Shown here piece by piece: positions 4,779-59,112 of a stretch of 64,000 nucleotides of DNA. The position numbers were made by a program, and so were the translations under genes. Positions within the stretch are counted from its first letter, which is position 1; each line of letters begins with the position of its first letter. Where the stretch lies: positions 858,786-922,785 of the forward strand of contig OZ287702.1 in NCBI GenBank assembly GCA_965649825.1, in the 5' to 3' direction. Below the pieces are notes generated by a model. That model worked only from the letters and a program-made list of their open reading frames with translations. It had not been told where the DNA came from and did not search any database. Origin of the DNA: Penicillus capitatus. Its lineage: Eukaryota > Plantae > Chlorophyta.

Positions 4779-5037
4779 GAGTGATCTCAGGAGTTTTGGT
4801 CTCCTGCCAGTGAGTGAGTGATCTCAGGAGTTTTGGTCTCCTGCCAGTGAGTGAGTGATCTCAGGAGTTTTGGTCTCCTGCCAGTGAGTGAGTGATCTCA
4901 GGAGTTTTGGTCTCCTGCCAGAGAGTGAGTGATCTCAGGAGTTTTGGTCTCCTGCCAGAGAGTGAGTGATCTCAGGAGTTTTGGTCTCCTGCCAGTGAGT
5001 GAGTGATCTCAGGAGTTTTGGTCTCCTGCCAGAGAGT
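4779..5037. repeat. 37-bp minisatellite gagtgatctcaggagttttggtctcctgccag(t/a)gagt x7
   Basis: Seven contiguous units (unit 7 starts at 5001). Each has an internal inverted repeat caggag/ctcctg. No spacers. Confidence 0.97.
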
Positions 5038-5260
5038 GATCTTGGTTTTTTTGAGAACTCGTGGTTCAATGTTCACTGTTCAATGTTTGGCATTTTCCAT
5101 TTCTGAACTTTTACATTCTCAGTCTTCTTTTCTCGCGTTCTCTGACTACGCACGTTATTGGCCCAATTCGGCTATTGACTTTTTTACATGACTAAAGACT
5201 GTTTTAACAGGCTCCCTAGTTATCCGGGTCCGCTAAGAACGCGATGAATGATCACCAAAT

Positions 5261-6017
5261 GTGCCGACAGATACCTACTTCGCCCTCGAATTGCTCACCG
5301 AAGAATGTGCGATTCTCGAATATGCCTCGGTGATGCTGAAGACGCAGATCTATACATTGGTGCCGAACAGAACGACTGTGGAAGCGGAGCTCGATGCTCT
5401 GAGACAGTCCGGCAAGATTCGTCTGTTTCAGCTGCCGACCAACCGAAACGACGTCGCCATTCTCCTCAGCACCGAACACGACGCAGACATCACCTCCATT
5501 GCTCACAGCCGTTCACCTCGCGAATCCCAAATCCTCCTAAAGTCAGCAAGATCGCACCCCCTGTCGACGTGATCGGATCTCTCCTGTGCACAGATTCAAA
5601 GAAGCCATTCTCGACAAGACCCGCGATCCTCTTCTCTCGCAAGAGCATCTGTTCGAGGCAATGGAAGTGACGGGCGATTCGGAGCGGGAGTTGGAAGCCG
5701 TTCGTGTGTTGCATTCTCTGGGATTCATCACAGATGACGTGCGACCTGGCGGCGGCCGTTCGAACAGCATGCATATCTGGTCACCACGCCTCGGCTTCTT
5801 CGTGACGAGTCTGATCGAGGGACGCAAAGAAATGCTGAGAATGTTCCAGCGAAAGAAATATCGCGAGATCAAAGAGTCGCGACTCTTCGAATGCGAACTG
5901 CGAAAATCGAGACTCGGTATCAAATACCATCTGCGTGACCTCATGGGACTCGGACTCCTGGACGAGAAATCCACACAGGCCGGGAAATTTTACACACTTG
6001 TCACTAAGCACGATTAG
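5261..6017 (+). CDS. STK19: STK19-like winged-helix protein, copy 1 (5' end uncertain; intron ~5539-5590)
   Basis: Motifs DTYFALELL, MLKTQIYTLVPNRTTVEAELDALRQSGKIRLFQL and GIKYHLRDLMGLGLL resemble the STK19 family. No in-frame ATG immediately upstream of 5261. Confidence 0.7.
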
Positions 6018-6649
6018 CTTCGTTTGCTTTCGATGATGTCGAGTAGCTCTTTGCGAAAATGGATGATGCTCAAGGGGGTCACACATTTCAGAATCTTCAA
6101 TTGGGACGCACTCCATTGAGTGAGATCTGTGGCGAGGATCTGTGCGAATTTGAGTAGATAGAGGGCACAGTCGGAGCCGTTTGTCTGCTGCGGGACGAGG
6201 GGAGCAACAAACTTCATGGATCCCTCCGTGGACAACACGGCATGCAGCTTCTTTGCTGTATCTCTTGCCGGCTCGTTGTTTACGCCGCCATACGAATCCA
6301 GGTGCACAAACGTACATTCCTGTCGCACCCAGATGAGCAAACTCCAGTGCGTTCCGCCTTCGGCTTGGGTCACATTTGGATTATCATTCACGGCCATAAA
6401 AATGACATCACACTGCTTGAGCTTTAACGGTCGGACGAAGCAGACGTCCACGTCTTCCACAGTCCCATTCTTCAGCAAAAAGGCGGCGGCGCCCGGGAGA
6501 AAACGAAGAGATGCATTCGGCACGACTTCATGTGTGAGGTATTCAAAGTAGAAGGCCACGAGTTGATCATTGAGCCAATATGGCCCCTTCAACAGATCCA
6601 CATCTGTTTGACGAAGCAGAACGTCGTGGAAGGAAATCATCGAATGCAC
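6014..6649 (-). CDS. SENP8: NEDD8-specific protease SENP8/NEDP1/DEN1 (peptidase C48), intronless
   Basis: LLRQTDVDLLKGPYWLNDQLVAFYFEYL, GGTHWSLL (catalytic His), HLDS (Asp), QQTNGSDCALY (Cys). Confidence 0.92.
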   Translation of the reverse strand: MHSMISFHDVLLRQTDVDLLKGPYWLNDQLVAFYFEYLTHEVVPNASLRFLPGAAAFLLKNGTVEDVDVCFVRPLKLKQCDVIFMAVNDNPNVTQAEGGTHWSLLIWVRQECTFVHLDSYGGVNNEPARDTAKKLHAVLSTEGSMKFVAPLVPQQTNGSDCALYLLKFAQILATDLTQWSASQLKILKCVTPLSIIHFRKELLDIIESKRS

Positions 6650-6714
6650 AATGCGTCATTTTATCGATCGTCTTAGGGTCTGCCAAAGTGGTGCTGATAC
6701 GTGGTGTTCGTGTC

Positions 6715-8050
6715 ATGCTTTGTGGTCCGTTACAGAGAGCTGTTTCGGCAGCTTCTCGACGAAGCGAGCCGCGACGGGTGTGGCTCCCCGTTGTCTGTTC
6801 TCAACAAGAGGCGAAAGGAGGCGGAAAACGACGCCCGAGACCTCCGGGAGGATCACACAGACACTTCAGTCGGTGGGCCTTCGGCGGCGCTGTCGGCATT
6901 GGCTCCGTCGGTTGGGCCTTTATACAAGTGCGTTTCTCAACGAGGTCTGCCATCGGATCTCAGTCCTGTGGCTCTCAGTTATCGAGCAATGGCTCTCTGC
7001 CAGGATTTCGAGCATTCTCGTCGTCCTCGACGGGTTTCGATCAAGTCGAGACCGATAAGTCATCGAAGGTCGATGGCTCTTCGAAGCCATCGTCATCAAA
7101 TGGAGCCAAGTGCTTGGCCAGTGTATGAGAGAAGTGGCGCAGGTGTGATCATAGGCGTCCTTCAGATGAGGGCCCCATTACAAAACTCGTCCTGATTTCT
7201 GGGGCATCTTGTATCCCGCACCCGGAAAAGATGGAGAAGGGAGGCGAAGATGCTTACTTTATTTCGGATGATGGACTGTCTGTCGGCGTAGCCGATGGCG
7301 TTGGTGGATGGGTCTGGCTTTACCTGCACTCTCACTCTTCTCACTCTTTTTTTAGGCACTCTCGGGCGTGGATGCTGGAAAGTATGCGCGGCTGTTGATG
7401 AAAACGGCGAAAGAAGCTGCCGAGAAGTCAACAGAAGATGACGAGTCCAAAATACCCAAGTCTGTTTTGACCGAAGCGCATGGCCTGACCAATGTTCCAG
7501 GTACGACCACTGCCTTCCATGACAGCATTTTTGCAGACGGAAGGGATCAGGGTCCTCAACGGCCTGCATTTTGCGTTTGGATTGTGAGGGATCGTGTTTG
7601 CATGCATCGAATCTGGGAGACTCCGGTTTTTTCATTTTGCGGAAAGACACCGTCGTCTTCAAATCTCCCCCTCAGCAATACCAGTTCAATTTTCCATACC
7701 AGATTGGATACGATACCTCCTTGAATAACACTCCAGATCAGGCAGAGGATTTTTGCGTCGATGTACAACCTGGAGATGTGATCGTAACGGGAACCGATGG
7801 ACTGTGGGACAATGTCTTCGTAGAAGAGTGCGCACGGATTGTCGTGAACTGCCGTGATGAGGGACTATGTCCAGAAGAATGCTCACTAAAAGTTGCTCGA
7901 TTTGCACAAGAGCAATCCCTGAGCCTGGAAAGCCGGACACCCTTCTTAAAGGGCGCCAAAGAAAATGGCTATTCTTATTACGGAGGCGGGAAGCCAGATG
8001 ACGTCACTGTTGTGGTGTCTTACGTATCTCAAGGCAATGCCAAACTGTGA
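6715..8050 (+). CDS. PP2C-family phosphatase, PTC7/PPTC7-like, with N-terminal organellar-type leader; spliced
   Basis: [62 protein letters not shown]. Introns ~7312-7355 and ~7502-7550. Confidence 0.9.
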
Positions 8051-17960: not shown

Positions 17961-20803
17961 TTAAGAAAAAGCACTGTCTCCAAATAGATTGGATGTTGTG
18001 TCCTTATTGGCCACGACAGCAGATGATGAAGAATCTTGAGTTCCGGGGAAAGCTGTTGCAAAACCAGAAAAATCTGCTTCGAAGCTGGCGTTCTGCGTCG
18101 ATTCTGTCTGCTGCGACGGAAAGACGGGATTGTCATCGAAGGCAGCGAAAGAAGAGGACACTGGATCGGGCGGCGGCGCTTCCTTTGGGACAAGAGGCGG
18201 CGGCGCAGGTTCATCAAAACTCACAGCAAAGTCAACGATGGGTGCTTTGGAAGGCGTCGTTGATGTGACAGCAGGCGGACTGGAAATGTCGGTCACAGGA
18301 AAGGCGCCGAAGTCTGCAAAATCCGCCGCCGGAGCTTGCGTGGCCGTCGCTGTGACCTGGAACGGATCTTCTGTAAAACCCATTGCTCCTGGGGCAGGCG
18401 CTCCTGTGTTAGTCAACGGTGTCTTCGTGGTTTCATTCATCTCTGCAACATGCCGTCCGCGTTTAGCATTTTTTGGTTTGATGGGACGGATAGATAGGTC
18501 TTACTTATGTTGTTGACAGCTTCCTGTATGGCTTTTTCGAATTCGGCATCCATGTCGTCTTTAACGTCAGGGAAGGCATCCACCAACACGAATCCATCCT
18601 CTTGCCAGCTGGATACATCGATACCGGCTCCGATCAAATCATCCGACCACGTAACGTCGTTTCCGTACAGGCTCAATCGTGCCTCGACCGGAATCTCCAC
18701 CCCAGCCTTGCATGCATGAGAGTGCAAATTAGAGTAGACACGTGCGGATTCCCGAAGGAGTTTTTGCGTCATTTCCGTATCGTTGGATTCCTTGGTGGAC
18801 TCCACCTGAGAACGTGGAGTCATTAGACCTGCCGTTTGCTGAGACATGTCGCACCTGAGACATAATCTTGTCGATGTCGGCTGAGGCAGAATGCACTTCG
18901 GCCTCTGCAGCCGCACACGCCATTTGCAGATCGCCCTGTCGCCGCTGAAGGAGCTCCTGTTGATGTTTGAAGCTCTCCAGCTGGATGGCAGTACAGATGG
19001 ACTGTTACAGAAGACGATGTTTGTGATGGGCGCCTACTTCGGCGATGAGTTTGTTGCGTCGGGCTTCTGTGGCGGCCACGGAGTCTTGCAGTCCTTGGAT
19101 CTGCATTTCCACCTGGTGTATCATCTCTGGTTGGACACGCTCCTGTGCTGTCAGCTGCTGCTCAGCTTCCGCCAGTTTTGCCTCCGCTTCTGCTTTTCGC
19201 CTCTCTGCCTCTTGCAACATGGTTGCGTGATTTCCGGCTTCGCGTGCCGCCTCTTCTGCCCCGTATCGAATCTGTTCGTATCTTTTTTCGGCTTCCACAG
19301 CAAGATCCTGTTCTCTTTTCAGCTTCTCTTGCACTTCCATGATGGCAACATCCATTCGGCTCTTGAACAACATCAACTCCTGCAGTGCTTTCTCATAGAA
19401 TTCTCTCTTGTTCCTGGCCATTTCTGCACTCTGATCTATTGCATACAGTTGCTGGTCTTTTTTCTGTGCTTCCATCTTTTCCGCCATCAATCGATCCCTG
19501 TTCAACAACAGACGGCTCGTGATGGCAATGCGAGAAATGAGACACTCTGCCTTTGAATAGGATCCAGCGTAGAGACCATGCCTTCATTGGCAACAGGACC
19601 TCTCCAACCCGGATAACCCGCAGGCTCAGGAGCCTGATAGACGGCTCGATTTGGAAGGGATGGAATGCCACCTTGGCCATAGCCTTGTTGCTGGACGCTG
19701 CCATGTCCACTGCTTTGCGCAATGGTCGGAAACACACCAGCTGGCAGCGCTGGCGGAAGCGGAATACCCTAGAAGACCATTTGTGAGATGACTGAGTGAA
19801 AGGCTGACTGTTTATCGTCACTTGTTTCGTTGTCTCAATGAGATAGAGACATTTGACGAACTGATCTCGATTGATGTGTCCAGCGTGGCCGGCCGCCAGT
19901 TGCCATATCTGTTTCAAGGTGTTCCTATCCACACCTCGACTTGAAAACAGTTCAATGCATTGCTGCCCCTATCATCATTCCCACACACACTACTGTTGGC
20001 AGTAACATGATATCCTTCTTACTTGCACCAGACCATCGTAGTCTGTATCGAGAGATTGAAACATCTGTCCGTAACGCGTTGCTTCTTCTATCGGTAGAGG
20101 AGGGTATTTCACATCTGTCCGACCTCCAGTATATTGATACGGCACTTGGCCTCCTCCTGTGACTTGTACGTTCGGAGTGTTGCCCGATAGAGACCCTCCT
20201 GTATACTGCATAGGGGGTGGCTGGCCGTGCCCACCCGTGTACTGCATAGTAGGCGGCTGGCCGTGCCCACCCGTGTACTGCATAGTAGGCGGCTGGCCGT
20301 GCCCACCCGTGTACTGCATAGTAGGCGGCTGGCCATGTCCACCCGTGTACTGCATGGCAGGGGCTGCGGACGGTGTCCACGTTTCGGGCGTCAGTCCAGA
20401 CAATTTAGGCAGCGGAGGCGGTGGTGCTGTACCCATCAGCAGCTGTTGAGCTTGCATTGGCGTGAAAGCTCCTCCGGACAACTAATCCCACCAACAACAC
20501 ATCCCGTCACATCACTCAATCCTTCTGTATGGAGTCACACCTGAGCAAGCGACACAAGACGTATCGCTCCATAGAATTGCTGCTTGTTCATGAAAGCCTG
20601 TGTCCCGGCCGTTTTGCCCCAAATCTGCCACACCAATCAACGCCATTCTGAAGTATGGCATTGCGTGTCACTTCTTTGAGGGTTTCGCGTGGAAGACCCG
20701 AACGTTGAAAGAAAGTTATCGCTTCCGTTCCCTCGATGCGGCCGTCGCGATTAGCGTCGGCGATTGCGAACCACCGTTCCAATGTATCAGCCTCCCCCGC
20801 CAT
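17961..20803 (-). CDS. EH-domain endocytic scaffold (Eps15/Pan1-like): EH domains, coiled coil, low-complexity tail
   Basis: WFAIADANRDGRIEGTEAITFFQRSGLPRETL, MFQSLDTDYDGLV, RNTLKQIWQLA..INRDQFVKCLYLI, long coiled coil and F-rich acidic tail (EDPF, FADF). Confidence 0.85.
20198..20355 (-). repeat. Coding 36-bp tandem repeat (MQYTGGHGQPPT x ~4.4) inside the EH protein
   Basis: Directly visible repeat atgcagtacacgggtgggcacggccagccgcctact on the minus strand. Confidence 0.93.
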
Positions 20804-20967: not shown

Positions 20968-23302
20968 ATGGAGACGATTGTGACGTCCGAAGAAAACGAT
21001 CTGCTGCTGGACTTCCTTACCGAACTCGGTGAACTTCGACACTCCAATATCGATCATCGATTAGCGATGATGTGAAAAAGGGTCGACGAACTCATTGGAA
21101 GAGAAGAGCCTTATTCTCGATCGTTTCTCCTTCGAAGCTGCTAAGCTCTACATCGAGTGCGTTGCAGGGGGTATGTTCGTTCGGGATCGATGTATGGATG
21201 TGCAGACTTGCCAAGGGGGATGCGGCGCTACGCCTAGAGGCTGGGTTTCTATCACTCGTGCACATCATTTACTGTGGCCAACACTTCGCCGATCGCATCT
21301 CACATGTTCACTTCTTTCCTCACGACGACACAGATCGAGAAAGAGTGATGGCAGAGTTTGCGTGAATGGTATGAAATGTTTTATCAAGAACTGAAAGAGG
21401 ATGCCATCGCTGTTAAGCATGTTGCAAGAGATGCCTTTCACTGGTCACACTCTTCTCACACTTTTCGATGATGTGACTGCCAGTCTCTCTAGGGGGACGG
21501 TTTGCCATGATTTGACAGCTGGTCTGTTCGAAAAGGCAAAAGCGATCGTGCTGTTGCATCCTGTCTTGTCAATAGATAAAGAAGCGGCCAGTGAGAAGCA
21601 GATCTTTCAGGTCCGAGCTCTCTTTAGCATCAAGATGACAGCTATGAGATAAATGATGATTTCTCTGTCGGTGCTGTTCAGGCTAAAAGCTTGTCGGATT
21701 TGGTGGATGTCATCGAGGCGCGTCCGATCGTGACGCGATTTGAAACCTCGGAAAACCATATCCGTTATGAACACATGGAGAACTGTCTCTTGCAGACGGC
21801 CTATCAAGCATGGCACCAAGACAAATGCTTGACATTTCAGGGCGACGTGCAAGATCGTCGACTGGTATTGGGCTTCGAATTCAGCGGCAATATGCAAAAC
21901 ATCGCCAATATCTTGAACGGAAACGTCAGTCGTCTTGCCTTCGATCGTGCCAGGGTGTGTGACGATGTTTGTTCAGGAGACATGTCTGAAGGAATATGCA
22001 GAAGACGAATTGGCATTCTTTGTGGCACGGGTGTTTCACGTACCGCGTTTTGTTTCGAGTCATCTGCAGCTGCGTATCGTCTGGGACGGCATTGTTGGAA
22101 GAAGTGGTCCCCAGTTTTCCAAGTGGAATCTTTCGTTGAGAGCGTTGATGATGGATGTATTCAGCTTTGATCATAAACGCCTGCTGGCGCATCTGTCCAA
22201 TCAGGACATCCCGTTGCGTATCTTTACCAGACTGATGCTGGGTATCGCCCTTGATGCATTTTTCGAAGATGAGGAAGCATTGAGCAGAGATCCTTTCTCT
22301 TCCCTCGAAAATGAATCGTTCTTTCATCACTTTTCTGCGAAACTCTGCTCGCAGATGTGTCACATCAAGGACGTACTGCGTTTAATCCTGTTCTGCCCGG
22401 GATTGGGAGCAGAGAAAGCAAGAGATCTTCTGGTCAGCACGAATGTATGGAGCGTCCGCCTCTTAACCGTCGGTCTTCTGATGATGTATCATGATATCTA
22501 GATTCGCCGAGACGATATGCGAAGGAGTGTGATCGAGTTTCCGTGCACAACAGAGTACAGAGATGTGTACCGCAGCAAGGTGGAATCTGCAGGTCTGACA
22601 GATACCATGGAGAACCTCATGGGTCATGCAAATCAGATCGAAGGGCGTTCTGGCACCGCTGCAGTGCATTTCCGCAGAGCTGGAATAACAGAGGAACACA
22701 ACACTGCCATGAGAGACGTCGAAAGGACACTGGCAGAGATTCTCACGCATGACAAAGACAACTTCATGCGTGCACTCCAGCTCGAGGCACTGCATATCGA
22801 AAAGCTCCTGAGCTCAGCCATCCAGCGGCAGCATATCGTGAACAACATCCACACCGTCTTGAAGGACATGCACCATGCTCTCAAGCAGAAGGCTGAACTG
22901 TTGGACAGGTTAGCATTTTTCGTTGCCTCTCATGAAGAGATCGAAGCAGAGAGTCACTATGGACTGATGGTCGCCGTGACGATTCTCTTGAAGAAAATGC
23001 CAGAGGATACGACTCGTGCGCTCGGATCAGAAGACAGTCGGCAGTTACAGGACGACTTTGAATCTATCTTTCGTCATCCACGTCTCTCTCAGGAGCTCAG
23101 CCTCTTGTTGGCGGTGCGAGTGGTCTATATCGCTTACCTTTTCGGCAGTCACATCGCCGGCTATCTCATTTTCGATCGAGATTTCATGCGAAGCATTCTG
23201 GCAATCATGCAGAACAAGTGCTTGAGTGGGATCGATCCGACCGATGCTTTACAGAAACGCATTCTGACATCTATACACGAGCATCTGACAGATCAAGACT
23301 GA
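20968..23302 (+). CDS. Uncharacterised, largely helical multi-exon protein
   Basis: Chain of long plus-strand ORFs (21401, 21691, 21935, 22517-23302) separated by short GT-AG gaps. Putative ATG at 20968 (METIVTSEENDLLLDFLTEL). No family recognised. Confidence 0.6.
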
Positions 23303-23643
23303 GATGATTCCTTCTGTACGGACTGCTGAGTAACAATGTGTGTCAAGGCTTTGAAAGTAAAGGGCTCACTCGAGGCCAACATCGACAGCATTTTGCGATT
23401 GATCCAGATGTTTTCGGTCTTCAAGCCATGCATGAAGGCACTGTATGTGATTCCATGCTCTCTTGTCCCGGCACCGATCCTTTGTATCCAGAGCTTCCGA
23501 AATTCGCGTTTCTTCTCTCGGCGGCTTTCGTACTGAAAGACCAGCGCTCGTTCGACCCGTGGACGGGCAATTCGGATGCAGTTCTTGCCTCGACCCTTGA
23601 ACCCCTTGGCCAGCCTCAGCACCGTTGCCTTATCCAGCGGCAT
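23293..23643 (-). CDS. MRPL20: Mitochondrial ribosomal protein bL20m, intronless
   Basis: DKATVLRLAKGFKGRGKNCIRIARPRVERAL..RREKKREFRKLWIQRI..INRKMLSMLASSEP is the bL20 signature. Confidence 0.93.
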   Translation of the reverse strand: MPLDKATVLRLAKGFKGRGKNCIRIARPRVERALVFQYESRREKKREFRKLWIQRIGAGTREHGITYSAFMHGLKTENIWINRKMLSMLASSEPFTFKALTHIVTQQSVQKESSQS

Positions 23644-23690
23644 CTTGCACAATGATGTGACGTTTACTGTGTGTTCGCTATTTCGTCGAC

Positions 23691-26602
23691 ATGCTGAAAC
23701 CTTCGCGTTTGTATAAGCCAAAGCCGACAACTGACCCGACCTATGACCTCCTTCGCTCTGAGACGGCACCACTCGGTGCCTTCTTCCGCCCGCAGTGTAT
23801 TGCCGTCATCGGTGCGACGGATCGGCCCGGAAGTGTCGGCAAAACGGTCTTATGGAATCTGATACGTCATCCATTCGGCGGAACTGTCTTTCCGATCAAT
23901 CCAAAACGAAAGAGCGTCCTGGGCGTCAGAGCCTATCCGACCGTCAAGGAGACACCGGACCAAGTTGAACTCGCCCTGATTGTGACTCCTGCCGTCACGG
24001 TGCCGAAACTCGTGAAAGAATGCGTCGATGCCGATATACGTGGCGTCATTATTCTCTCTGCCGGGTTCAAAGAGATTGGCGAATCGGGAATTCAGCTGGA
24101 GAAGGAGATTCTGGAGGCGATTCGAAAGAGTGAGACACGTGTGATTGGGCCCAATTGCTTAGGACTCATGAATCCTTTGACGGGACTGAATGCAACATTT
24201 GCTAGCTCCTTGGCCAAACCAGGCAATGTCGGATTCATCAGTCAAAGCGGCGCATTGTGCACAGCTGTATTGGATTGGAGTCTGGAAGAGAATGTCGGCT
24301 TCAGTGCCTTTGTCTCGATCGGTTCCATGCTTGACGTGAACTGGGGAGATTTGATTTATTACTTAGGAGATGACCCACGCACGCACAGCATTGTCATTTA
24401 TATGGAATCGGTGGGGAATGCACGGAGATTTCTCTCTGCGGCACGAGAGGTGGCCATGACCAAGCCGATTATTGTGATCAAGGCTGGGAGAACAACAGAA
24501 GCGGCAAAGGCAGCGGCATCGCATACAGGATCACTTGCCGGCAGCGATGCTGTACTGGATGCTGCTTTCACTCGCTGTGGCGTCATGCGTGTCAACACCA
24601 TTGCTCAGCTATTCAACTTGGCGGAAGTCCTTTCAAAACAGGTGACGCATGGATGACGTGACCTTTGGGATTGGACCGTAGAGAATCGGATGGCTATGTT
24701 TTTAGGGACAGAAGCTACCAGCAGGTCCACGACTGACAATCATCACCAATGCAGGGGGTCCAGGGGTGTTGGCCACTGATGCATTGATGTTGACTGGAGG
24801 AGAATTGGCCACTCTGTCCGATGAGACACAAACGGCCTTAGATGCTATCTTGCCATCCCAATGGAGTCACGGCAATCCCATCGATATCCTGGGAGACGCC
24901 GAACCCGAACGCTATGCCAAGACACTCGAAGTGTGTGCTCAGGACGCGAACAGTGATGGACTGCTGGTGGTATTGACCCCTCAAGCCATGACCGATGCGA
25001 CGAGTACCGCAGAGAAACTGAAGAATGTGACGGAGAGCGTGAAGAAACCTGTTTTGGCAAGTTGGATGGGAGGCCCAGATGTGATGCCAGGCGTCTCCGT
25101 TTTGAACAAAGCAGGCATTCCAACCTACTCCTTCCCCGATGCCGCCTGCGAAGTGTATAATCTGATGTGGAAATACAAGCACAATCTTCAATCCCTCTAC
25201 GAAACGCCGACCCTGTCCAGGAAAGGAAAGCTCACGGATTACATGAACGGGACAGATTCCAGTCAAGGCGAATCTGTTCAGGGAATGATCGACAAAGCCC
25301 TTCGAGAAGGCAGGACGATCTTGACAGAACTGGAATCGAAGAAGCTCCTCTCGGAATACGACATTCCAACTGTCCAATCACTCTTCGCAACCTGTGCAGA
25401 AGAAGCAGTGGCTCAAGCTGAGGCTATGGGATATCCCGTTGTCGTCAAGGTTGTTTCCAAGACGATCACACATAAAACAGATGTCGGCGGTGTTAAGCTC
25501 AATGTGCATTCATCCGAAGATGTGCGCCAGACTTTTGAAGAGATGCAAAAGTCGATCACCGAAAAGGTCCATCCTTTCAAATTTATTGCGTGTCGTGAGG
25601 ATGGGTATTCTGTAGTTTGGCGAGGAGCACTTTGAGGGTGTCTCGATACAGCCGATGGTGTCACTCAGTGATGGATACGAACTCATTATCGGCAGCAGTG
25701 TGGATCCTCAGTTCGGTCCTGTCTTGGTGTTCGGTTCCGGTGGATCGCTGGTCGAAGTTTTCCAGGATCGCAGCATCATGCTGCCTCCGCTGACCACAAC
25801 GTTGGCCAGAAGAATGATGGAGACGACAAAAATCTACAAGGCATTGAAAGGCGTCCGTGGCCGTTCCTCGGCTGATCTGACCGAGCTGGAACACCTCCTT
25901 GTGCGTTTCAGTGAACTGATTGTCGAGAATCCACGCATTAAGGAGTTCGATATCAATCCATTGCTAGTCTTTGAGGCGTCACACAGATTCCCTCTGCTGG
26001 CGCTGGACGCCCGTGCTGTTCTCTTTCCGGCTGATGTGCCCGACAAGGACCTGCCGAAGACGGCCATTCGTCCCTATCCTTCACAGTACATCTCCCACTG
26101 GACGTTATCGGATGGAGAGCACATCGTTATCCGTCCTATCCGTCCAGAAGACGAGAAGAAAATTGCAGAATTCCATCGAACCTTATCGGAGGAGAGCGTC
26201 TACTTCAGATACTTCCATTCCGTCAAGCTGGACACCCGTGTGGCCCACGAACGGCTGACAAGGATCTGTTTTATCGATTACGATCGTGAAATCGCTTTGG
26301 TCATTGAGCACGAAGGAAAGGAGGGTACAGAGATCATTGGTGCCTCTCGCCTCAGCAAGTCACATGAAGGCATCAATCAAGCAGAGTTTGCTATGCTGAT
26401 CACGGACGGCTATCAGCGCAAGGGACTCGGAACGGAGACGCTGAAAAGATTGGTTGATGTTGGCCGCCATGAGAAAATTGAAACGATCGTTGCGCAGATT
26501 CTGCCGGAGAATATGGCAATGCAGCGTGTCTGCGAGAAGGTCGGTTTCGAGATCGAGTTCGATCACGAAAGCGACTATGTCCGAGCTCGACTTCAATTGT
26601 AG
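23691..26602 (+). CDS. Bacterial-type ADP-forming acyl-CoA synthetase (alpha+beta) fused to a C-terminal GNAT acetyltransferase; two introns
   Basis: [89 protein letters not shown]; [21 protein letters not shown]. Introns begin at 24642 and 25567. Confidence 0.93.
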
Positions 26603-27139: not shown

Positions 27140-30100
27140 ATGGCCATCTGGACCCGGAGTTGTTTCTCTTTGTGTTTTTTTTTTCGAATAAAGGAGCAAT
27201 TCAGGAGATGCAGCAACAAAGTCCCACGAATGCACCTGGTATGGAGTTTAGATCGCCGAGATCGGAAGAAAGATCGCACAGCATCGGGGAAGAGCACAGT
27301 TCAGTTGGGAGATCTCAAAATGCGGAAGAGTACAGGGATCGTGCGTTTTCACGCGGCCACCCGTCTTTGTTCTTCTCGACATCTGCCTCACCTGCCAGTT
27401 CTCAGATTCGAGTATTCGCTTCAAGGCAGCCAAGACCATCCACGGGTCCTTTGATTCATAGAACGTGCTGAAGATGCAAGAATGGAGAATCGAAAAGCTT
27501 CTGCAGGAAAAATCGGAACTCGAAAAGGTCCATAGCCAACAGAGCCGCGAAGCTGAAGAGCTCAGAAGAGAGAACATACAAGTGTGCAAAGCAGTGAAGT
27601 CAGAAACGCATATCTGCCTTTGATGCTCGTTCTGATACAGGTTTCGGAAAAGATCCTCGATTTGGATGCACAGGCGGCGAAGATGCGCAGTGCTCTTCGA
27701 GAAAGGCAACAGTTACTGGAACAGACGCAGCACAAACACGCGAGAGATATCGATGAAAGAGTTCGGACCGAGAATCGATTGAAAAACGACATCGAGTCAT
27801 TGAAGCACGAAGTCGATCTCAGAGACAGCAGCATTCGGTAAGCCTTGGCAGTTCCTTGAAGTGCCACCGTCATCATTGGAGATAGAGACCTCGAACAACG
27901 AAAGAAAACCGTTGAAGAGAACAGCTCGGCGTTGAAGCATTGTTTGAGTTACTATGGTTTGCTTCCCACAACGACAGAAGACTCCTGGAATCGAGAGATG
28001 ATCCAACAAGTCAATGCAAAGGACATTGCTCTCAGAGAACTCTCCGAACGTTTTAACGAAGCACAGGAGAAACAGGCAAAGAGAAGATAAGATTCAAGAT
28101 CGCGATGACGTTTCGTGATGATGATAGGTTGCTCTAGTGGAAGCTTATGAGCGATTGGAAGCCGAAATGAAGCTGGAGACAAAAAGAGCTGTCGAGAAAC
28201 ATAAGGGCTGTGTCGAGGAGCTTACCAAAAGGCTCAGAATGATCGAATGTGAATTGGAGACATCTCGGCGTAGTTACGAATCGCTGGAGCATTCGTATGG
28301 GCGACTCGAATCGCAATTGGCAGAATCTACAAGACAGAATGCTATGTATGAGGAAGGAGTGTATGGTCTGTCAGAGGTCGGCAAACATGCCTGTGCACAA
28401 TTTGTGTACAGACATGTCTGTAACTAGGCGGTGGAGAATATTAAGGAATTAAAAGTCCGTTTAATTGAAGCCAAAAAGAAACAGGAAGAGCTCGTATGGA
28501 CTGCAAACCAGCTGTCTGAGCAGCTCGAAGATGCGGATGATGAAAACGCGAAACTCAGAGAGCAAGTATAGTCGGAAGAAGACCCTGGGAATCCATACAT
28601 GTCCGTGTGATACAGTTGGGAATACCCCTACGAGAACACATTTGCACCGAGGAAGGTTCCGGAATGGGGAGAACGTTGACCCGGTCGCAGTTAACAGCTC
28701 TGAATCGTCAGTTGGAAGCCGAAATCGATGATCTCGAGAAGGAAAGGTCATCTCTCAAGACCCAACTGAGACTCAAATGCACAGCCTATGGAAAAGATGC
28801 TGTGGAGGAGTTTTTAAACGAAGCCCAATCGCAGTTGGTGCTCATGTTCATCGAAGAACTGCAGTCGTCGAGTGATGCCTCCTCTGCAAACTCCAAAACG
28901 CAGATCATACAGCATCTATCGAAGAAGGTCGGCAGAACGTGTATCTAGAGTTCTTTGGAAGAATGCTTCGAAGCAGATTGAGATTCTAGAAGGCCAGTTG
29001 CAACAGAGAGCTACCAGTACTTTACACCCACGATTACGAGGAGTTAACGATCAGCGAATCTTCGATCAAACCAAGAAGGCCCTGACTGATTTGAAAGAAA
29101 CTGTTTTGAAAGGAGATGGCACAGAACAAACAGAAAACGGTGGGTACAGTTCGGTCTTGGAACCACGAGCTAGCCTCCTTGTGACTGACCGACAGGAACG
29201 GCAATGATGCCGGAGGGTTCGGAGATCGCTCACAAGGTGGACTGTTTGATGGAACTGGTGACAGACGCAGAAAAGAAAGTGACCGACACCACTCTACGCG
29301 ATGCTTTTGCGACGGATATCGACCATCGCCACTTTCCAGAAGCTTCTTGTGGCTTATCCTTTCAACAGGCATAAAATAACGGATTGCATCTGTCTCAGTG
29401 GAAAAGCTGCTGAAAGAACAAATGCAGTCATTGGCCAGAGAAGTGGCCGAGTTGCAGATTGGACGGGATCAGCTACGGCAAGAGAACGAAAAGCTCAAGG
29501 CAACGAAGCCGTCAACAGATGTGGACTGCCAAACAGGTCTGGTCTTTCGGTGGCTCGGCACAAGTGTCGGCGCCAAGCAACACGTCAACGCCGTCTGTCC
29601 TTGTTTCAGAGATGCAGGATGTCGTGTCTCTGTCTCACATAACGGCCATCTCTGCCCTGAATGAAAAACTGAAAGAAATGCAAAAGATCTGTCGACTGTA
29701 CAGAAACAAACTAAAAGAGATGGAAGAGACGCACATCGTTTCTCAGTCTGCTCTGAAGTCGGAACTCGAACAAACACAAAAACAAAACGAAGAGTCTACA
29801 AAGCAGGCACGAGAAATATTCTTTTCCTTCGTATGAGACCGCGCTCTAGATCTGTGAACTTAAACTCTCCTTGGAAGCGGCGCAGATGCTGAACAGAGAG
29901 CTCGAGAATGGATTGTCAGTCACATCACGGCACGATCCAGAACAGATAAAGGCTAACGGCCAGAAACTCGTTCGCGAGAAAGCCCTTCTCCACGTAACCA
30001 TGACTACCCAAATCGTGCATCTCAAAAGATGTGTATCCTGTTCAGGTGAAATGTCAAAAACTGGAGCAGCGATTGAAAACTGCGACTGAGGCTGAAAGGC

Positions 30101-33100
30101 AGTGGAGTGAATGGCATGCTGAATTGAAACATGTCACTGAGGATGCCACTGTTGCTCTGCGAACGGAGATGTATCTCCTTAAACATGCAAACAGAAAGCT
30201 CAAACTGAAGCTGCTTGATGCGATGCATCAATTGGACCAATCCATGCCAATAAAGGCAGGGTATCACTCAAGTGGCCTTTCCACGATGCATTCCGAAACA
30301 CAGGCTTTCTGCGATCTCTACCATCACCACGAGAAAACGAGAGCCAAGTTGATGGGCGATTTCGCGGAACAGATGTCCGTTCACAGAAGATCCCAATCTG
30401 ATCTCATCGCAGCCAGAAAGAATGCAGCGTTCTGGATGCAACAGTAAAGAATCGCGAGAACTCAAAAAGATATCATGCACTTTGTCTTTCAGATACTACG
30501 GCATCTCAGCAGTTCAACATCATCTTGAGCATGGAACACGTAATAGATTAGAAACACCAAACGAAGATCGATACCAATCCCTTCCAGGGAATCCACTTAC
30601 AGCAGATGTGCTCAACAATAAACTGAAGAGGGAGTTGGAGGTCGAAGAAGGACAAAGAAAGCAGGCAGAAGGGAATGTTAAACAGATGGAGGCGAGATCT
30701 TTTTCGCCGATCATTCGAGAGTTTGAAAATGCATGCAGGAGCATATGGATGTACTGAACGAACAGGTGTTGGCATCAGCAAAGGAGCTCGATCAGACAAG
30801 ACAACTTGTTTGGGAACTGGAGGAACAGATATCTCAGGCGCGTAACTGTTCTCATGTTAGGACAGTGGCTGCACTTCACGAGGCAGAAATCGAGATTGAG
30901 CGGCTGTCCCTTGATGTAATGTGACAGAGCATGTGTTCCAACCCAATGTTTGATCCTGTAGAATGAACATTTTTGGAAAGGAACGAGGGATGGAAGCATT
31001 CAGGAATGTTCTGGAGCTGGAGCCATCATTTGCAGAACACCATCTGTTGTTCCGTTGTATGAAGAAGACGATCAACATTGTTGTCAGACGTTGCAGAACG
31101 ACAATGAGACGAAGAGGTTGCAGGAAAGAGTCCTGGTTCTTCAGAAAGCTTACAGAACTGTATATCGACAGAATACAGCCTTGCAACATCAGCTTGTATG
31201 GACAGAGAAATTGAGATCAGACCTGGAGGATCGCCTGTTTCAATTTCCCAAGTTCGCTGAAAAGAGCATCTCGATGGACAGCGATGAGAATCGATGCCGG
31301 TCGATTGAAGAAGCCTTTACGAGACAGAGATTGAAGACACTGCTAGACGAAAATGCACATCTCCATCAGTACATGCACAAACTCGCAGTGTCATTAGACT
31401 CCCAGCAAACATCTCTCTCACGAGAAGACAAATCGGAGTCTAACGCGTGGTCGGTGTCGAAGCAAGAGAAGGCAACTGCGGATCGAAAGCTCAAAAGTGC
31501 TGAAGAAGAGGTGCGGCCAATTGAGTCGCTCTTTTGTCGAAAAGGACTATACGGCATGTTTTGTAGATTTCTTACTTGCGATGCAAGGTGCAGAGGCTGG
31601 AGGAATCTCTAAAGAAGCTAGAGAATACTGCAATCTCTGCTCAAGAAGATTGCAGACAAGAGATAAAGAAATCGGGGGACCTCTGTGGAAGCCTGGAGGC
31701 TCAACTACTAGAACAGCGACGGTTGACGGACAAACAAATGAACTTCTGTCTCTATCATGCCTTCTTGAATACACTTGGTTTACGCAATAGCCATAAAAGC
31801 GATCCTGAAAAGGAAAACGACTGCAGACTTCTTCTGAATCAGGTGATGACAAGTGGATGACCTCTCTGAAGGAGCGAATTGATAAGAGATCGTTCAAACG
31901 TTGTAGATAGATCTTGTCAAAGACATCAAAATAGAGATGGAAGACCTTAAGTACAAGCATCGAGAGACAGAGATGGCACTCAAGAAAGAAATGGATAGAA
32001 ATGGTGGATTGGAAGAAGAAATCGTTTGCCTTCGGAGAAGAATGGCCGAAGAAGAATCGCGACAACGCAAAGAAGCCTCAATCGAGGTCTGTTTTCTCCA
32101 AGTCCCCAACACAAAACATAATCATCGACCATCATCAGGAGACTTCTGTCGTCGAGCGTCTGCTGCAAGACTTGAAGGCGCAGCTGCGTCTGAAAGATGC
32201 CAAGATTGCTGAACTGACGCAGATAGAGTGTGACACAAAGATTGGAGATGTGGTGAGAATGCCGAGTTCGACGCTAGAAGGATAGAGAATCCAATGTTCG
32301 AAGTCTCTCTGGTGCTCAGGAAGTCGAGCAGAGGGGCGACGGGGCCCGTGTGCTCCTCAGTCAAGAAAGGGAGCTGTCTTGGTACGAAGAACAGCTTAAG
32401 GAAGCTGAAGAGAAGCTGAAGGCATTCCAATCGACATACGAATCCGAATTGCTTGCCAAAGAGAAACAGATGAAAGAATTGCTCCACGAAAAAGAGAACA
32501 AAGAAAACCCTGCCAAACATGATAGATCAAGAAACAAATGGCAAAGACAACTGAAGGAGAAAGATATGACGATAAAACAACTCAATGAAGCACTCGAGCT
32601 TCTCAAACAACAACGTCTGTCGGACAGCAAAGACAAAACAACGGACAAGTTTCTGATAAATGATTTTCGAAGGACTGACGCTTCATCGAATACAGGCGCC
32701 GTTCATCGATGGACTCGATTCCACAGAGATCCGCGTCAAATGCAGAAGATCTTCGCTCTTGGAAAGCTCAAAGACTGAAAGAAATCCGTCTACTCCAGAA
32801 CAGGATCAGAGAGGCAGACGATCAGTTGAAAGAGCAAGATGAACAGATAAAGGACACGAAGAGCAATCTACAGAAAGAACGCGAGATCAGTACACGTCTA
32901 CGGATCCAGATAAAACAACTGAGGCAGAAGACTGGGATGGACAGCAGCACAACACAGGCACTTAACTGACAGCAGTGATCGTTGAGATACGGTGCGAAGA
33001 AGAAATGATTGTAGGACAGGCGGGAGCATGTCGAAGAAGCCCAAGAGCGTATGAATGCATTGATTGCTGAGAATGAGCTCCTGAGGAGACAAACAGGGAG

Positions 33101-34486
33101 AGGCAGCGGCACCCAGCCGCTGGATTTCAATCAATGGAAAGAGCAAAAGAGACTGCAACAGAAGATCCAAAGCCTAAGGTCCTGTCTCGAGTTCGCAGTG
33201 TATGTCCAGTAAGTATGCGACCTCTGTTCCTAACAGGGAGATATTGAACAAAAAGAACGAGGAATGCACACAGGCAAAGACAGTAGAGGCAACACTGCGG
33301 AAGAAAGCAGAATCCCTTGAGGGTCAAGTGGCACGTCTGCAAAAGTCCCTTGCGTCTCAAAGCCATGCCTATTCCCAGACCAAAGCTCGACTAAAGACAG
33401 CTGCGGATCCAAAGCAGGTCCATCCGTTCTTTCTCCCTACTTGGTCGCAGTGGAAGAAAGCAGGTCTCGGAATTATTGTTGCAAGTGGTGCAGTTAGAAA
33501 CTGAACGAGATGACCTCAGGGTCGAAAACCAGAAACGCGAAAGACGACCAGTTCCTCGATCTCCAGAGGGGGAAGATCTGATAACAGATGCAGACGATTG
33601 GGAGTTACAATACTGGAAGAAGGCAAGAGAGATAGAAAAGTCGTGCTACTATAGAGGCGACCATCGTATGCTGCATAGGAAGAAGAGGCATTCGAATATC
33701 GTCTCCGACAAGAGCAAGCCGAAGCACGACTCCGTCGCCTGCAGCAATCACTCCGAGACTTCTTTGGCGATACGGCCGAGAAGATAATCAGGTTGGATGT
33801 CGACGTCGACCAGAGCAGGTCTGAAAAGAAAGCATCTGGTGGCACAAATCGAGAACGGGAACTGCTTGAGACGATCGACACGCTGACAAGGGCATTGAAA
33901 AGAGCACAGTCCAGGGTTTCCCTTACAAAATACAACCAAGTATCAGAAGTGTCGGCCATCTCAAAATCCTCACGATAGGTATTGCAGCTACTCGGACAGA
34001 GGAAGGAGCTTCGGGACCGTTTAGAACAGCTGACCAGCCGAGAAGGCACGAAATCAAGTGTCAAGAAACGGAAAGAGCTGGAAGCGATGAATGACGAGAA
34101 TGCGGCACTCAAAGAAGAACTGCAGAAACAAAGAGACTGTGCGCTTCTCCAGCAAGAGACATTAAGGAAACAGATCTCAGAACAAGTCCATCTCGCCCGT
34201 CCATGACATCACTCTTTCTTTCTCTTCCCAGGGGCAACAAATCGCTCGTCTCGAAGCAGCTCGGCCATGTCAAACGACAGGAGACCTTTCAGTATCAACC
34301 AGAGAAGACGATGCCGTCCATTCAGAAAGGCTGAAGCTGAAGGGCCGCATCCAGCAACTCGAAAAGGATAATGCATCCCTGAAAGCTGAGCTCGATGGTC
34401 TCAGTCCGGATTTCTTTGACGAAATCGAAGATATGAAGGATGATTACTGTCAGTTGTTGCAACACGTCCGGCAACAAGAGTCATAA
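27140..34486 (+). CDS. CEP290: Centrosomal/transition-zone protein CEP290 (long multi-exon coiled coil)
   Basis: YEEGVYGLSEAVE.IKELK..LEDADDENAKLRE and C-terminal LKAELDGLSPDFFDEIEDMKDDY match the CEP290 motifs (YESGVYGL; FFEEIEDLK). Start approximate. Confidence 0.85.
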
Positions 34487-40152: not shown

Positions 40153-41134
40153 TTACAAATTGTTGAAAAGACGCGGCGATATCAGTCCCATCGCCAACAA
40201 TCCGGCGAAAACCAGATACAGCGCGGCAAAGCGTTGGAGATAGAGATTGTAGCGTACCGATGGCTTCGTTGCAAAGACGTCGCCGATGCAGGAGATGGCA
40301 AACGGCAAGGTCAATAACGGGAGCAGGAAAGCGAGTAGATGTCCCTCTTTCGCCCACCAGAGACCCGCGACATACACAAGACCGATAGACCATACCAGTT
40401 CCCATCGTCCCTTCTCATAGCCCACGAGATTCGAGATCGTGTGCTTTCCTGCAAGGCGGTCGCTGTCGATGTCGCGGAGATTGTTGATAACCAGCAAATT
40501 GGTCGACATCCATCCGAGCTGACAGCCGGCTACCAAACGAGGGGCCTCGAGTAACGGTCCACCTGCGTGCCATACATCAGAAGGTTACGTCTGCACTCGA
40601 TCTGCCTTGAATGATGAACGAGGCCAAGACGAAATAGACGACGCCGAAGAAGATAAAGACGGCGATGTCGCCCAGAGCGTAGTAACCATAGGGAAAGGGC
40701 CATCCAGTGTAGAGGTATCCTGCCACGGCGCAAGCGATTTCGAGTTTCAGAACAATGGGACCGCGAAGGCGGATGGCTGGAAAGGTAAAGAGAAATGCGG
40801 CAGGAAAGCAGAGGACGCCAACGACGTAACACCAAAGCGCAGCACGTCGGGAGAAAATCCGTTTGGGACCCAGACGCTTCCATCCATCAACGCCTCGTGT
40901 GAAATCGAGGGCATCGTTGACCAAATTGCAGCCGATTTGCAAGAGAAACGGCGAAGGACCACAGCAGAAGAATGGAAAAAACGCCAAGGGTCGACCCTGA
41001 TTCAGAGCAAGAGCAAGAACAACGACGCTCGGTGCGAGCGACGCCACGAGGGTCTTCCAGCGCACGATGTGCAAGAAAGAACGTACGACCTCGTAGCATC
41101 GTTGGCGCTGGATGCGGTGAACGAACGAAACCAT
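40153..41134 (-). CDS. menA: DHNA prenyltransferase, bacterial MenA-type (UbiA family); one intron
   Basis: RWKTLVASLAP, QIGCNLVNDALDFTRGVDGWKRLGPKR, GYLYTGWPFPYGYYALGDI, INNLRDIDSDRLAGKHT. Confidence 0.85.
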
Positions 41135-54604: not shown

Positions 54605-55421
54605 ATGGAGTCTCTCGCGAAGTGCAGCGTCCAAGGTTCCCGTCCAGAATTCTGCCTCCAGCCCAGAACAGTGCATTCGAAAGAGGCACGACTGCGCATG
54701 AAAGATGTGCGTTCGTTCTTTGTGCGTCTCTCTACCCAAGAGAGCAAACAAAGCGCATCGGGTGCGAAATCCCTCGCGCCGCCTTTGCGTCTGAAACAGA
54801 CAGCGACCAAGGCGCCATCGTCTGAATTGTCCATTTCGACGCAGCTTCGAAACCAGCGCATGACTGAGCGACGTCTGCAGTTGGGCCGCTCTGTCGATGC
54901 ACTTCGCGAGTATTTTCCCCACTTGTTGGTCACACCATGGCCACAGGAATTGCTTTCGGACGAGGTCGTCCTCAAAGAAACGATCTCACCGCACTTCAGT
55001 CTGAAGCCATTCAACGCATACGGAAAACGAAACTACAACAGACACATGTGGTTTGTGCGCCTCTACGCCTCGCTCTTTTGCAGAGAGACCAAAGTAAGAC
55101 GCATCATCATTGTGATTGGAACTGGTCCCTATCTGATGTGCTGTGTTGGGCGGCTGTCAGGTGCAGGTAATGCGGTTTTGGCAGCCGAGCAGAGAGATCG
55201 TCATCATTCGATGGAGCATGAAATTTCGCCCACGCGTCTTTCACAGCATCTACGGCACGACTTTGCAGATGGATGGCGTTTCGGAGATCAAACTGGATCG
55301 CCAAGGACGTATCTATCAGCATCAGGTGGATGTGACCGACCGACACAAAGTCAAGTTTGATTTGGAGTTCCAGCGTTTCGCTCAGAACGTCCTCTGCGAA
55401 GCAACAGTTGCCGTGGGATGA
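54605..55421 (+). CDS. DUF2358/SnoaL-like (NTF2-fold) protein, full copy; one intron
   Basis: LREYFPHLL..GKRNY..VRLYASLF|VQVMRFWQP..IRWSMKFRPR..MDGVSEIKLDRQGRIYQHQVD fits the DUF2358 pattern. Confidence 0.68.
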
Positions 55422-55570
55422 TGACAGTGCTCAACGGACCAACAATCTATTGTCCGTTGAGGCATGATCGCCTTTGAACGGACGGCAGTGTGTATCTGCT
55501 GATGTGACGGATTGTATCTGTACATGTACCACACACCTTCGATTCACCAGAGCACGAAATCTTGGACAAG

Positions 55571-55815
55571 ATGTCAAATGCCGTTCGCATCACTTGTGCC
55601 CGAGTGCAGACGCGATCGCGTCACGTAGCTATCTCGCTAGAAGGTCCTCCTGCCCGAAAGCAACGCCTTCTTGAAGGACGGTCGATCGCGGTAGGTGTAC
55701 GCACCTTCGTTCGGCGTTTCGATCGAGATCTGGTCGAGAGCATCTGCGCGAGGAAGAAGATCGACACGAGTGCGGATATCGAACGCTGACGAATGTTTCT
55801 ACTCGTGTTGTTGTG
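55571..55815 (+). pseudogene. QNG1 (queuosine salvage) 5' fragment, interrupted in intron 2
   Basis: Nearly identical to 59113-59350; stops abruptly at the inserted inverted block. Confidence 0.85.
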
Positions 55816-56145
55816 CTTGATCGAAACCCGTCGAGGACGACGAGAATGCTCGAAATCCTGGCAGAGAGCCATTGCTCGATAACTGAGAGCCACAGGACTG
55901 AGATCCGATGGCAGACCTCTTGAGAAACGCACTTTTATAAAGGCCCAACCGACGGAGCCAATGCCGACAGCGCCGCCGAAGGCCCACCGACTGAAGTGTC
56001 TGTGTGATCCTCCTGGAGGTCTCGGGCGTCGTTTTCCGCCTCCTTTCGCCTCTTGTTGAGAACAGACAACGGGGAGCCACACCCGTCGCGGCTCGCTTCG
56101 TCGAGAAGCTGCCGAAACAGCTCTCTGTAACGGACCACAAAGCAT
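55816..56145 (-). pseudogene. Truncated, frameshifted 5' fragment of the PP2C gene
   Basis: Copy of 6715-7045 with a 1-bp deletion (caacgagg > caagagg, near 55920); no catalytic domain. Confidence 0.88.
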
Positions 56146-56210
56146 GACACGAACACCACGTATCAGCACCACTTTGGCAGACCCTAAGACGATCGATAAA
56201 ATGACGCATT

Positions 56211-58963: not shown

Positions 58964-59112
58964 TGACAGTGCACAACGGACCAACAATCTATTGTCCGTT
59001 GAGGCATGATCGCCTTTGAACGGACGGCAGTGTGTATCTGCTGATGTGACGGATTCTATCTGTACATGTACCACACACCTTCGATTCACCAGAGCACGAA
59101 ATCTTGGACAAG

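Follow-up and report, generated by a model that had tools for sequence, protein, structure and literature searches.

The locus described here raises the question of how a gene with the domain layout of a bacterial enzyme came to reside in the genome of a green alga, and whether its product is still the working enzyme that its conserved residues suggest. The gene lies at positions 23691–26602 on the plus strand of a 64,000-nucleotide stretch of Penicillus capitatus DNA (contig OZ287702.1, 858,786 to 922,785), which we call the window and to whose positions all coordinates below refer. It encodes an NDP-forming acyl-CoA synthetase (ACD) that is fused to a C-terminal GNAT acetyltransferase. On balance, we consider it rather probable that ACD-GNAT is a functional nuclear gene of the Bryopsidales which was acquired once from a filamentous, Leptolyngbya-like cyanobacterium, and that it encodes an apparently catalytic ACD joined to a Pat-type GNAT, which would work by a two-histidine phosphoryl relay and by acetylation of protein lysines, respectively.

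Three long open reading frames (ORFs) in different frames cover this part of the plus strand, and excision of two GT..AG introns joins them into a single protein of 932 amino acids. The coding region is complete, with three exons, an ATG at 23691 and a TAG stop codon at 26600–26602. For comparison we used the orthologue of Bryopsis sp. KO-2023 as well as a sister lineage whose contigs are collinear with the window over more than 20 kb at 84–87% nucleotide identity and which shares both introns. Exon 1 (23691–24641, residues 1–317) encodes the CoA-binding Rossmann subdomain and the flavodoxin-like subdomain with the swinging-loop histidine (Pfam CoA_binding_2 and Succ_CoA_lig) and is 99.4% identical at the amino-acid level to its counterpart in the sister lineage. 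Exon 2 (24706–25566, residues 318–604) contributes the CoA-ligase subdomain, a linker and the first half of the ATP-grasp domain (Ligase_CoA_2 and ATP-grasp_5) and aligns without gaps with Bryopsis. Exon 3 (25616–26602, residues 605–932) holds the second half of the ATP-grasp domain, a further linker and the GNAT (ATP-grasp_5, Acetyltransf_3 and Acetyltransf_1), and a search with this exon retrieved an ORF with 96% identity from an ENA metagenome as well as a 73% identical relative in a Caulerpa cluster.

Both introns are in phase 0 and follow the GT..AG rule. Intron 1 (24642–24705, 64 nt) coincides in position and phase with intron 2 of the Bryopsis gene, and its sequence is 76% identical to that of the sister lineage. 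Its acceptor has an alternative 6 nt downstream, at 24711, and we dropped this model, with a product of 930 amino acids, in favour of the acceptor at 24705 because here the AG directly follows a run of T and recurs in the sister lineage, and because a two-residue gap against Bryopsis disappears. The residues around the junction, KQ/GQKLPAGP, then pair gap-free with KQ/DQRLPAGP of Bryopsis. Intron 2 (25567–25615, 49 nt) has the position and phase of intron 5 of Bryopsis, and it is found at the same site in a Caulerpa-like contig (L004) and in the sister lineage (L003). Between the window and the sister lineage, the coding sequences are 91% identical and the introns only 65–76%, so that intron positions were kept while their sequences diverged.

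The ACD-GNAT gene is nuclear, eukaryotic and domesticated. Bacterial contamination or an assembly chimera would account for its 62–68% identity to cyanobacterial proteins and for its bacterial domain layout, but this explanation is refuted by several lines of evidence. The two spliceosomal introns would disrupt a bacterial ORF, and shared introns are present in the orthologues of Bryopsis and Caulerpa. The gene is flanked by eukaryotic neighbours, including an SDE2 splicing regulator, a Ulp1-type protease, an ion channel, a queuosine-salvage gene, GUF1 and the mitochondrial-type ribosomal protein gene bL20m, and the collinearity of these flanks extends to the second lineage. The locus is present in three independent assemblies, in one of which a 6.93-Mb contig matches the window with 99.3% identity over 6.9 kb. 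Moreover, its codon usage is that of the host: the relative synonymous codon usage of ACD-GNAT correlates with that of the neighbouring genes at r = 0.77, compared to 0.27–0.42 with the cyanobacterial homologues. The gene is also under strong purifying selection, as comparison with the sister lineage gives a ratio of nonsynonymous to synonymous substitution rates (dN/dS) of 0.049 at a dS of 0.42. In the sister lineage itself, the ACD-GNAT region and the GUF1 region each occur in two nearly identical versions (P0241/P0362 and P0121/P0366), which lie on two contigs (L003 and a 4.08-Mb contig of ENA ERZ26696514) with similar coverages of 162x and 180x. These paired copies could represent haplotypes or a duplicated genome segment.

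Orthologues in other algae place the gene in a wider lineage. The Bryopsis protein GMH40709.1, annotated as a hypothetical protein, is the only named non-cyanobacterial entry among the best 120 database matches, and two of the seven introns of its gene, introns 2 and 5, are at exactly the positions and in the phase of the two window introns. A second orthologue, Caulerpa lentillifera g1202.t1 (EukProt), sits in the 90%-identity cluster of the 73% identical exon-3 relative, whose Caulerpa-like contig carries the intron at the site of window intron 2. The window protein is 73% identical to the Caulerpa protein and 61–68% identical to that of Bryopsis, and the gene tree groups it with Caulerpa. 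Ostreobium would agree with the window in GC content (52.4% against 50.2%) and in ecology, but an assignment to it is not favoured by this tree, in which the window does not fall outside Bryopsis plus Caulerpa. The g1202.t1 model (P0363) comprises 835 amino acids, the first of which corresponds to window residue ~97; its N-terminus was probably cut off by gene prediction. In addition, the algal proteins share small insertions relative to those of cyanobacteria at the N-terminus, after the first intron site, in the linker between the modules and near the C-terminus, and they form one clade in our neighbour-joining (NJ) trees with bootstrap values of 100/100, 200/200 and 195/200.

A gene for a PP2C-type phosphatase at 7186–8050 on the plus strand of the window has an orthologue, with 76–86% amino-acid identity, on the Caulerpa-like contig (L004, 1572–2552, minus strand). 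On that contig it lies tail to tail with ACD-GNAT, which amounts to a loose conserved linkage across bryopsidalean lineages.

A siphonous green alga is thus indicated as the host by four features, namely the tree of this gene, the introns in common, the linkage to PP2C and the affinities of bL20m. The initial annotation, made from the sequence alone, had described the gene as a domesticated one in an alga and a contaminant as unlikely. These assignments hold up: its domestication is documented by the introns, the ameliorated codon usage and a dN/dS of, in round figures, 0.05, the algal host by the orthologues in Bryopsis and Caulerpa and by a bL20m whose nearest relatives are presumably the plant and green-algal mitoribosome proteins, and a contaminant is contradicted by the introns, the eukaryotic flanks, the codon usage and the introns shared among orthologues.

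From where did the alga obtain this gene? The best 120 database matches have 62–68% identity at 97–100% coverage and, apart from Bryopsis, are cyanobacterial wherever they are named. NCBI labels the cyanobacterial matches as ‘bifunctional acetate--CoA ligase family protein/GNAT family N-acetyltransferase’. Homologues in Chloroflexi reach ~60% identity, and the suggestion of the initial annotation that the N-terminus resembles cyanobacterial or Chloroflexi-type proteins agrees with what we found. When one genome of each prokaryotic species was scanned, the fusion was recovered at 59–65% identity in many groups, namely Cyanobacteria, Planctomycetota, Chloroflexota, Acidobacteriota, Verrucomicrobiota, Nitrospirota, Rhodothermales, Thioalkalivibrio and one Saccharimonadales bin. 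The form that retains both histidines is found in at least nine bacterial phyla with about 60% identity over 900 residues. In an NJ tree with other bacteria as outgroups, the algal clade is nested within the cyanobacteria, and its sister is a group of Leptolyngbya, Trichocoleus, Halomicronema and Pseudanabaena FACHB-2040 with 81–90% support. Three sequences of the gammaproteobacterium Thioalkalivibrio (L023, L026 and L031) nest inside the cyanobacteria beside Nodosilinea and Oscillatoria in the NJ tree, which makes horizontal movement of the fusion gene among bacteria probable as well.

We favour a single old horizontal transfer from a filamentous cyanobacterium to the ancestor of Bryopsis and Caulerpa, early in the Bryopsidales. 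After the transfer, the gene would have gained its introns and the codon usage of its host and would have been under strong purifying selection ever since. The main evolutionary alternative is descent from the primary plastid endosymbiont, that is, endosymbiotic gene transfer followed by vertical inheritance in green algae and loss in most lineages. Its nearest relatives being cyanobacterial, the gene would fit such a history too. Furthermore, our searches rank 90%-identity clusters by their representative and list green-algal orthologues down to about 61% identity, so that a wider spread among eukaryotes below this value would lie beyond their reach. However, the algal clade is placed inside crown filamentous cyanobacteria rather than at their base, and the only named eukaryotes with the gene among the matches listed, besides the lineage of the window itself, are Bryopsis and Caulerpa. 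ADP-forming acetyl-CoA synthetases are not known from land plants or from Chlamydomonas either, which also counts against plastid descent. A 2026 paper points in the same direction, as it reports the absence of this enzyme from the chlamydomonadalean Leontynka. Because of the position of the clade within crown cyanobacteria and its occurrence, among the matches listed, in siphonous green algae only, we prefer horizontal transfer and regard plastid descent as improbable. The initial annotation had left a horizontal and an endosymbiotic acquisition side by side; of the two, the endosymbiotic route now appears to be the less likely one.

The second part of the question concerns what the protein does. 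Each of the Pfam domains CoA_binding_2, Succ_CoA_lig, Ligase_CoA_2, ATP-grasp_5 and GNAT (Acetyltransf_3/_1) scores above its curated cut-off, and all five ACD subdomains (CoA-binding, flavodoxin-like, CoA-ligase and ATP-grasp with lid) occur in a single chain in the order 1-2-5-4-3, followed by the GNAT domain (26123–26551). The protein thus shows the layout of Pat and PatZ, an N-terminal ACD-like region of ~700 amino acids and then a C-terminal GNAT, and it matches both PatZ (9it0) and the cyanobacterial ‘bifunctional acetate--CoA ligase family protein/GNAT’ proteins colinearly over its full length. The best solved structure is that of E. coli PatZ (9it0/9isq; window residues 28–925 against residues 6–875 of 9it0_A, E = 1e-147), followed by Nmar_0206 (8wzu), a single-chain ADP-forming 4-hydroxybutyrate-CoA ligase (residues 32–725 against 7–687, E = 5e-136).

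Every catalytic residue expected of the two modules can be located. The phosphohistidine of the alpha part, His278 (codon 24522–24524), lies on the swinging loop in the motif ASHTGS and aligns with His254 of 4xyl_A and H256 of 8wzu. That of the beta part, His573 (codon 25471–25473), lies in the ATP-grasp domain in the motif THKTDVGG and aligns with H535 of 8wzu, H68 of 4xyl_B and H531 of PatZ. According to the Nmar_0206 paper, H535 takes the gamma-phosphate of ATP and hands it to H256 of the swinging loop, which ferries it across a distance of about 30 Å to reach the site of CoA. In the GNAT domain, Glu861 (codon 26384–26386, within AEFA) aligns with the glutamate of the AEF motif of PatZ, numbered E809 in the PatZ paper. 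The acetyl-CoA P-loop, QRKGLG (residues 871–876, 26414–26431), aligns with that of PatZ and has the form Q/R-x-x-G-x-G/A. PatZ retains the beta histidine, H531, and differs at the alpha loop, where a four-residue gap and the sequence LLNTTAG leave it without a histidine. A review ascribes the inactivity of the synthetase domain of type I and type II Pat enzymes to the absence of this swinging-loop histidine. The window protein does not have this defect, as its SHTG loop is complete, including the histidine. The claims of the initial annotation on this point, namely that ACD alpha, ACD beta and a C-terminal GNAT are combined in one gene with two introns and that both catalytic histidines are present in contrast to enterobacterial Pat, are confirmed by the Pfam matches, the spliced 932-residue frame and the alignments to 4xyl, 8wzu and 9it0.

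These residues are under evident constraint. None of 121 close homologues departs from the window protein at the two histidines (121/121 for His278), the DINPLL motif, the GNAT glutamate or Q-x-x-G-x-G, and both histidines are also invariant in 80/80 sequences from nine named bacterial phyla. Retention of the two histidines is therefore a property of the whole bacterial family and not a special feature of the alga.

Does the ACD module still catalyse, or has it become a sensor? In the main functional alternative, the protein would be a Pat-like regulator whose GNAT is the sole catalytic output, while the ACD part senses acetyl-CoA, CoA or nucleotides without any flux between acetyl-CoA and acetate. 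PatZ is, as mentioned, the closest full-length solved structure, and the N-terminal domain of PatZ and of the Salmonella enterica Pat (SePat) binds acetyl-CoA and activates the GNAT allosterically, with ATP binding being ‘not functionally relevant’. However, PatZ lacks precisely the histidine to which the literature attributes the inactivity of the domain, and the SHTG loop, the beta histidine and DINPLL are invariant across bacterial phyla and algae. Moreover, by module the dN/dS values are 0.018 for ACD alpha, 0.079 for ATP-grasp and 0.073 for GNAT; the ACD alpha module is thus the most constrained part of the protein, which would be hard to explain by ligand sensing alone. We consider a purely regulatory role possible, though distinctly less probable than a catalytic ACD. 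Catalysis by the ACD module is to be expected because every feature of an active enzyme is present.

Which acid the module would act on is a separate issue. Acetate is the likeliest one, based on the naming of the family and on a near-threshold score with the acetate--CoA ligase alpha-subunit model TIGR02717. Alternatively, the ACD might be active on another acid or operate mainly in the acyl-CoA-forming direction, from free acid and ATP, and feed the fused GNAT, without any ATP-yielding acetate fermentation. The ACD reaction is reversible, solved relatives act on 4-hydroxybutyrate, 3-hydroxypropionate and dimethylsulfoniopropionate (DMSP), and the family also occurs in cyanobacteria and in aerobic bacteria such as Acidobacteriaceae. 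In contrast, NCBI names the bacterial orthologues acetate--CoA ligase family proteins, and although the best alpha-subunit match in the PDB is chain 2csu_A, annotated as a ‘hypothetical protein’, an acetyl-CoA synthetase (NDP-forming), 4xyl_A, is close behind. We assign this alternative a low probability, similar to that of the purely regulatory role, and retain acetate as the most likely substrate. An identity as a DddX-type DMSP lyase, prompted by a match to 7cm9, was rejected, as this match reached 246 bits and was far weaker than those to ACDs and PatZ.

In the mechanism that we propose, the ACD module would reversibly convert an acyl-CoA, most likely acetyl-CoA, together with ADP and Pi into the free acid, CoA and ATP. 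The reaction would involve an acyl-phosphate and the relay of a phosphoryl group, which the swinging-loop His278 would pass on to His573 of the ATP-grasp domain. The C-terminal GNAT would use acetyl-CoA to acetylate protein lysines, and by analogy with Pat, for which AMP-forming acetyl-CoA synthetase is the best-known target, its substrate might be an AMP-forming acyl-CoA synthetase. One acetyl-CoA pool would then control both the excretion of acetate with a gain of ATP and the shut-off of acetate re-activation, so that a futile cycle would be avoided. The Ostreobium genome paper describes nightly anoxia in the habitat of this bryopsidalean and the lack of a PTA/ACK route from acetyl-CoA to acetate, and an ACD would fill a gap of this kind. 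The coupling of anoxic acetate and ATP metabolism to protein acetylation that the initial annotation proposed would be plausible. The most far-reaching version of this scenario is that the bifunctional enzyme generates substrate-level ATP from acetyl-CoA while its GNAT switches off AMP-forming acetyl-CoA synthetase, and that it was captured from associated Leptolyngbya- or Halomicronema-like cyanobacteria for acetate fermentation in nightly anoxia, in place of PTA-ACK. We offer it as a speculation which is more likely to be wrong in some part than right as a whole.

The location of the enzyme also bears on its role. An in-frame stop codon 11 codons upstream of the ATG, which the sister lineage shares, and the start codon of bL20m on the opposite strand 47 bp away make an N-terminal extension within exon 1 impossible. 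Since the window protein has no presequence, a cytosolic location is predicted.

Several points weigh against our reading as a whole, in addition to the reach of the searches noted above. The trees are NJ trees on p-distance corrections, and the eukaryotic branches in them are long. With regard to acetate as the substrate, TIGR02717, an equivalog-domain model, gave 551.9 bits and thereby narrowly missed its cut-off of 567.15. The top-scoring NCBIfam model is the 4-hydroxybutyrate-CoA ligase, far under its own cut-off, and the 3-hydroxypropionate- and Archaeoglobus acetate-ligase models likewise score far below theirs. In Pat and PatZ, the only characterised relatives of the same layout, the ACD-like part serves to sense acetyl-CoA for regulation, and the binding of ATP has no measurable role. 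Our literature searches retrieved no paper on the histidine-retaining ACD-GNAT fusion from either bacteria or algae, and a 2025 review of cyanobacterial acetylation names only cGNAT2 as a confirmed acetyltransferase. Finally, the Bryopsis model (BSKO_08613, L001 10001–10160) starts 54 residues before the N-terminus of the window and cyanobacterial proteins, with an extension of transit-peptide-like appearance in which Ser, Thr, Ala and Arg abound, and an internal methionine at position 48 would yield a start like that of the window protein. Localisation may thus differ between lineages, or the Bryopsis start may have been annotated too far upstream. A search of the full text of the Bryopsis genome preprint for ‘horizontal gene transfer’ gave no hit.

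If our reading is correct, the locus provides a clear and datable transfer from a cyanobacterium to an alga, which left siphonous green algae with a conserved nuclear gene. It also draws attention to a large bacterial family in which no catalytic residue of either module has been lost, at odds with the textbook ‘dead synthetase domain’ of Pat-type enzymes. If the two activities are coupled, they would directly link the node of acetyl-CoA, acetate and ATP to protein acetylation, and algae in anoxic nights would gain an alternative to PTA-ACK for ATP-yielding acetate formation. As metabolic gene transfers into algae are common, the surprise is a moderate one.

The immediate surroundings of the gene offer a hint at how it may have come to be expressed. 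On the opposite strand, head to head with ACD-GNAT, lies the bL20m gene (23293–23643, minus strand), which matches Pfam Ribosomal_L20. Its best PDB matches are 6xyw, 9evs, 7pkt and 8a22, which from their entry codes we take to be bL20m of plant and green-algal mitoribosomes. We found no existing sequence record for the product of this L20 gene. The start codons of the two divergent genes are separated by a spacer of 47 bp (23644–23690) that is 89% identical to that of the sister lineage, compared to 65–76% for the introns. This conservation suggests a shared bidirectional promoter or overlapping 5′ untranslated regions. The head-to-head layout also occurs in the sister lineage (L003) and was not seen at the Bryopsis locus. 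The transferred gene may perhaps owe its expression to its landing next to a housekeeping gene.

Further features of the window lie at a distance from ACD-GNAT. A 1.79-kb inverted duplication with 99.2% identity carries a Ulp1/C48 protease gene (5255–7045 and 55816–57605), a 1.04-kb direct duplication has 99.1% identity (54776–55811 and 58318–59353), and a third pair of 0.65 kb has 91% identity (57679–58325 and 59243–59894). Taken together, these pairs are a sign that segments close to the right end of the window were duplicated recently. Minisatellites are located at 43–501 (15.3 copies of a 30-bp unit with 99% matches, open in several frames) as well as at 4779–5039 and 20204–20366 (7.1 copies of a 37-bp unit and 4.6 copies of a 36-bp unit, in this order). 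Downstream of ACD-GNAT, the region 28000–34000 shows an excess of A over T (AT skew 0.19–0.31) and a lower GC content of 45–48%, and it overlaps plus-strand ORFs that resemble a long coiled-coil protein. An ORF at 40577–41134 on the minus strand contains the motif N-D-x-x-D-x-x-x-G-x-D, which is similar to that of MenA/UBIAD1-type prenyltransferases; this fragment has no Pfam match. Rfam gave no match anywhere in the window.

Among known systems, the bacterial bifunctional acetate--CoA ligase/GNAT proteins, such as those of Leptolyngbya, Trichocoleus, Halomicronema and Okeania, are closest to the window protein. They have the same length and domain order, 59–68% identity, both histidines, the GNAT glutamate and the P-loop. 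In contrast to these, the algal gene is nuclear and has spliceosomal introns, the codon usage of its host and clade-specific small insertions. E. coli PatZ (YfiQ) and Salmonella enterica Pat, type I GNATs (9it0, 9isq), share with it the combination of ACD-like region and GNAT, the catalytic glutamate, the P-loop and the ATP-grasp histidine. However, part of the swinging loop, with its histidine, is missing from PatZ, whose ACD-like domain is held to be inactive, whereas the loop of the window protein is complete. Moreover, at the position of PatZ H676 the window protein has the Asn of the DINPLL motif that is typical of ACDs. The ACDs Nmar_0206 (8wzu), Ca. Korarchaeum ACD1 (4xyl) and Pyrococcus PH0766/PH1789 (2csu, 1wr2) have the same subdomain order 1-2-5-4-3, and both of their histidines align exactly with those of the window protein. 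In contrast to the latter, these single-chain or two-subunit enzymes, whose substrates are acetate, 4-hydroxybutyrate and 3-hydroxypropionate, have no GNAT. Finally, the ADP-forming acetyl-CoA synthetases of anaerobic protists (Giardia, Entamoeba and others) are likewise ACD family enzymes in eukaryotes, which were acquired after the last eukaryotic common ancestor and serve ATP-yielding acetate formation; none of them is known to be fused to a GNAT.

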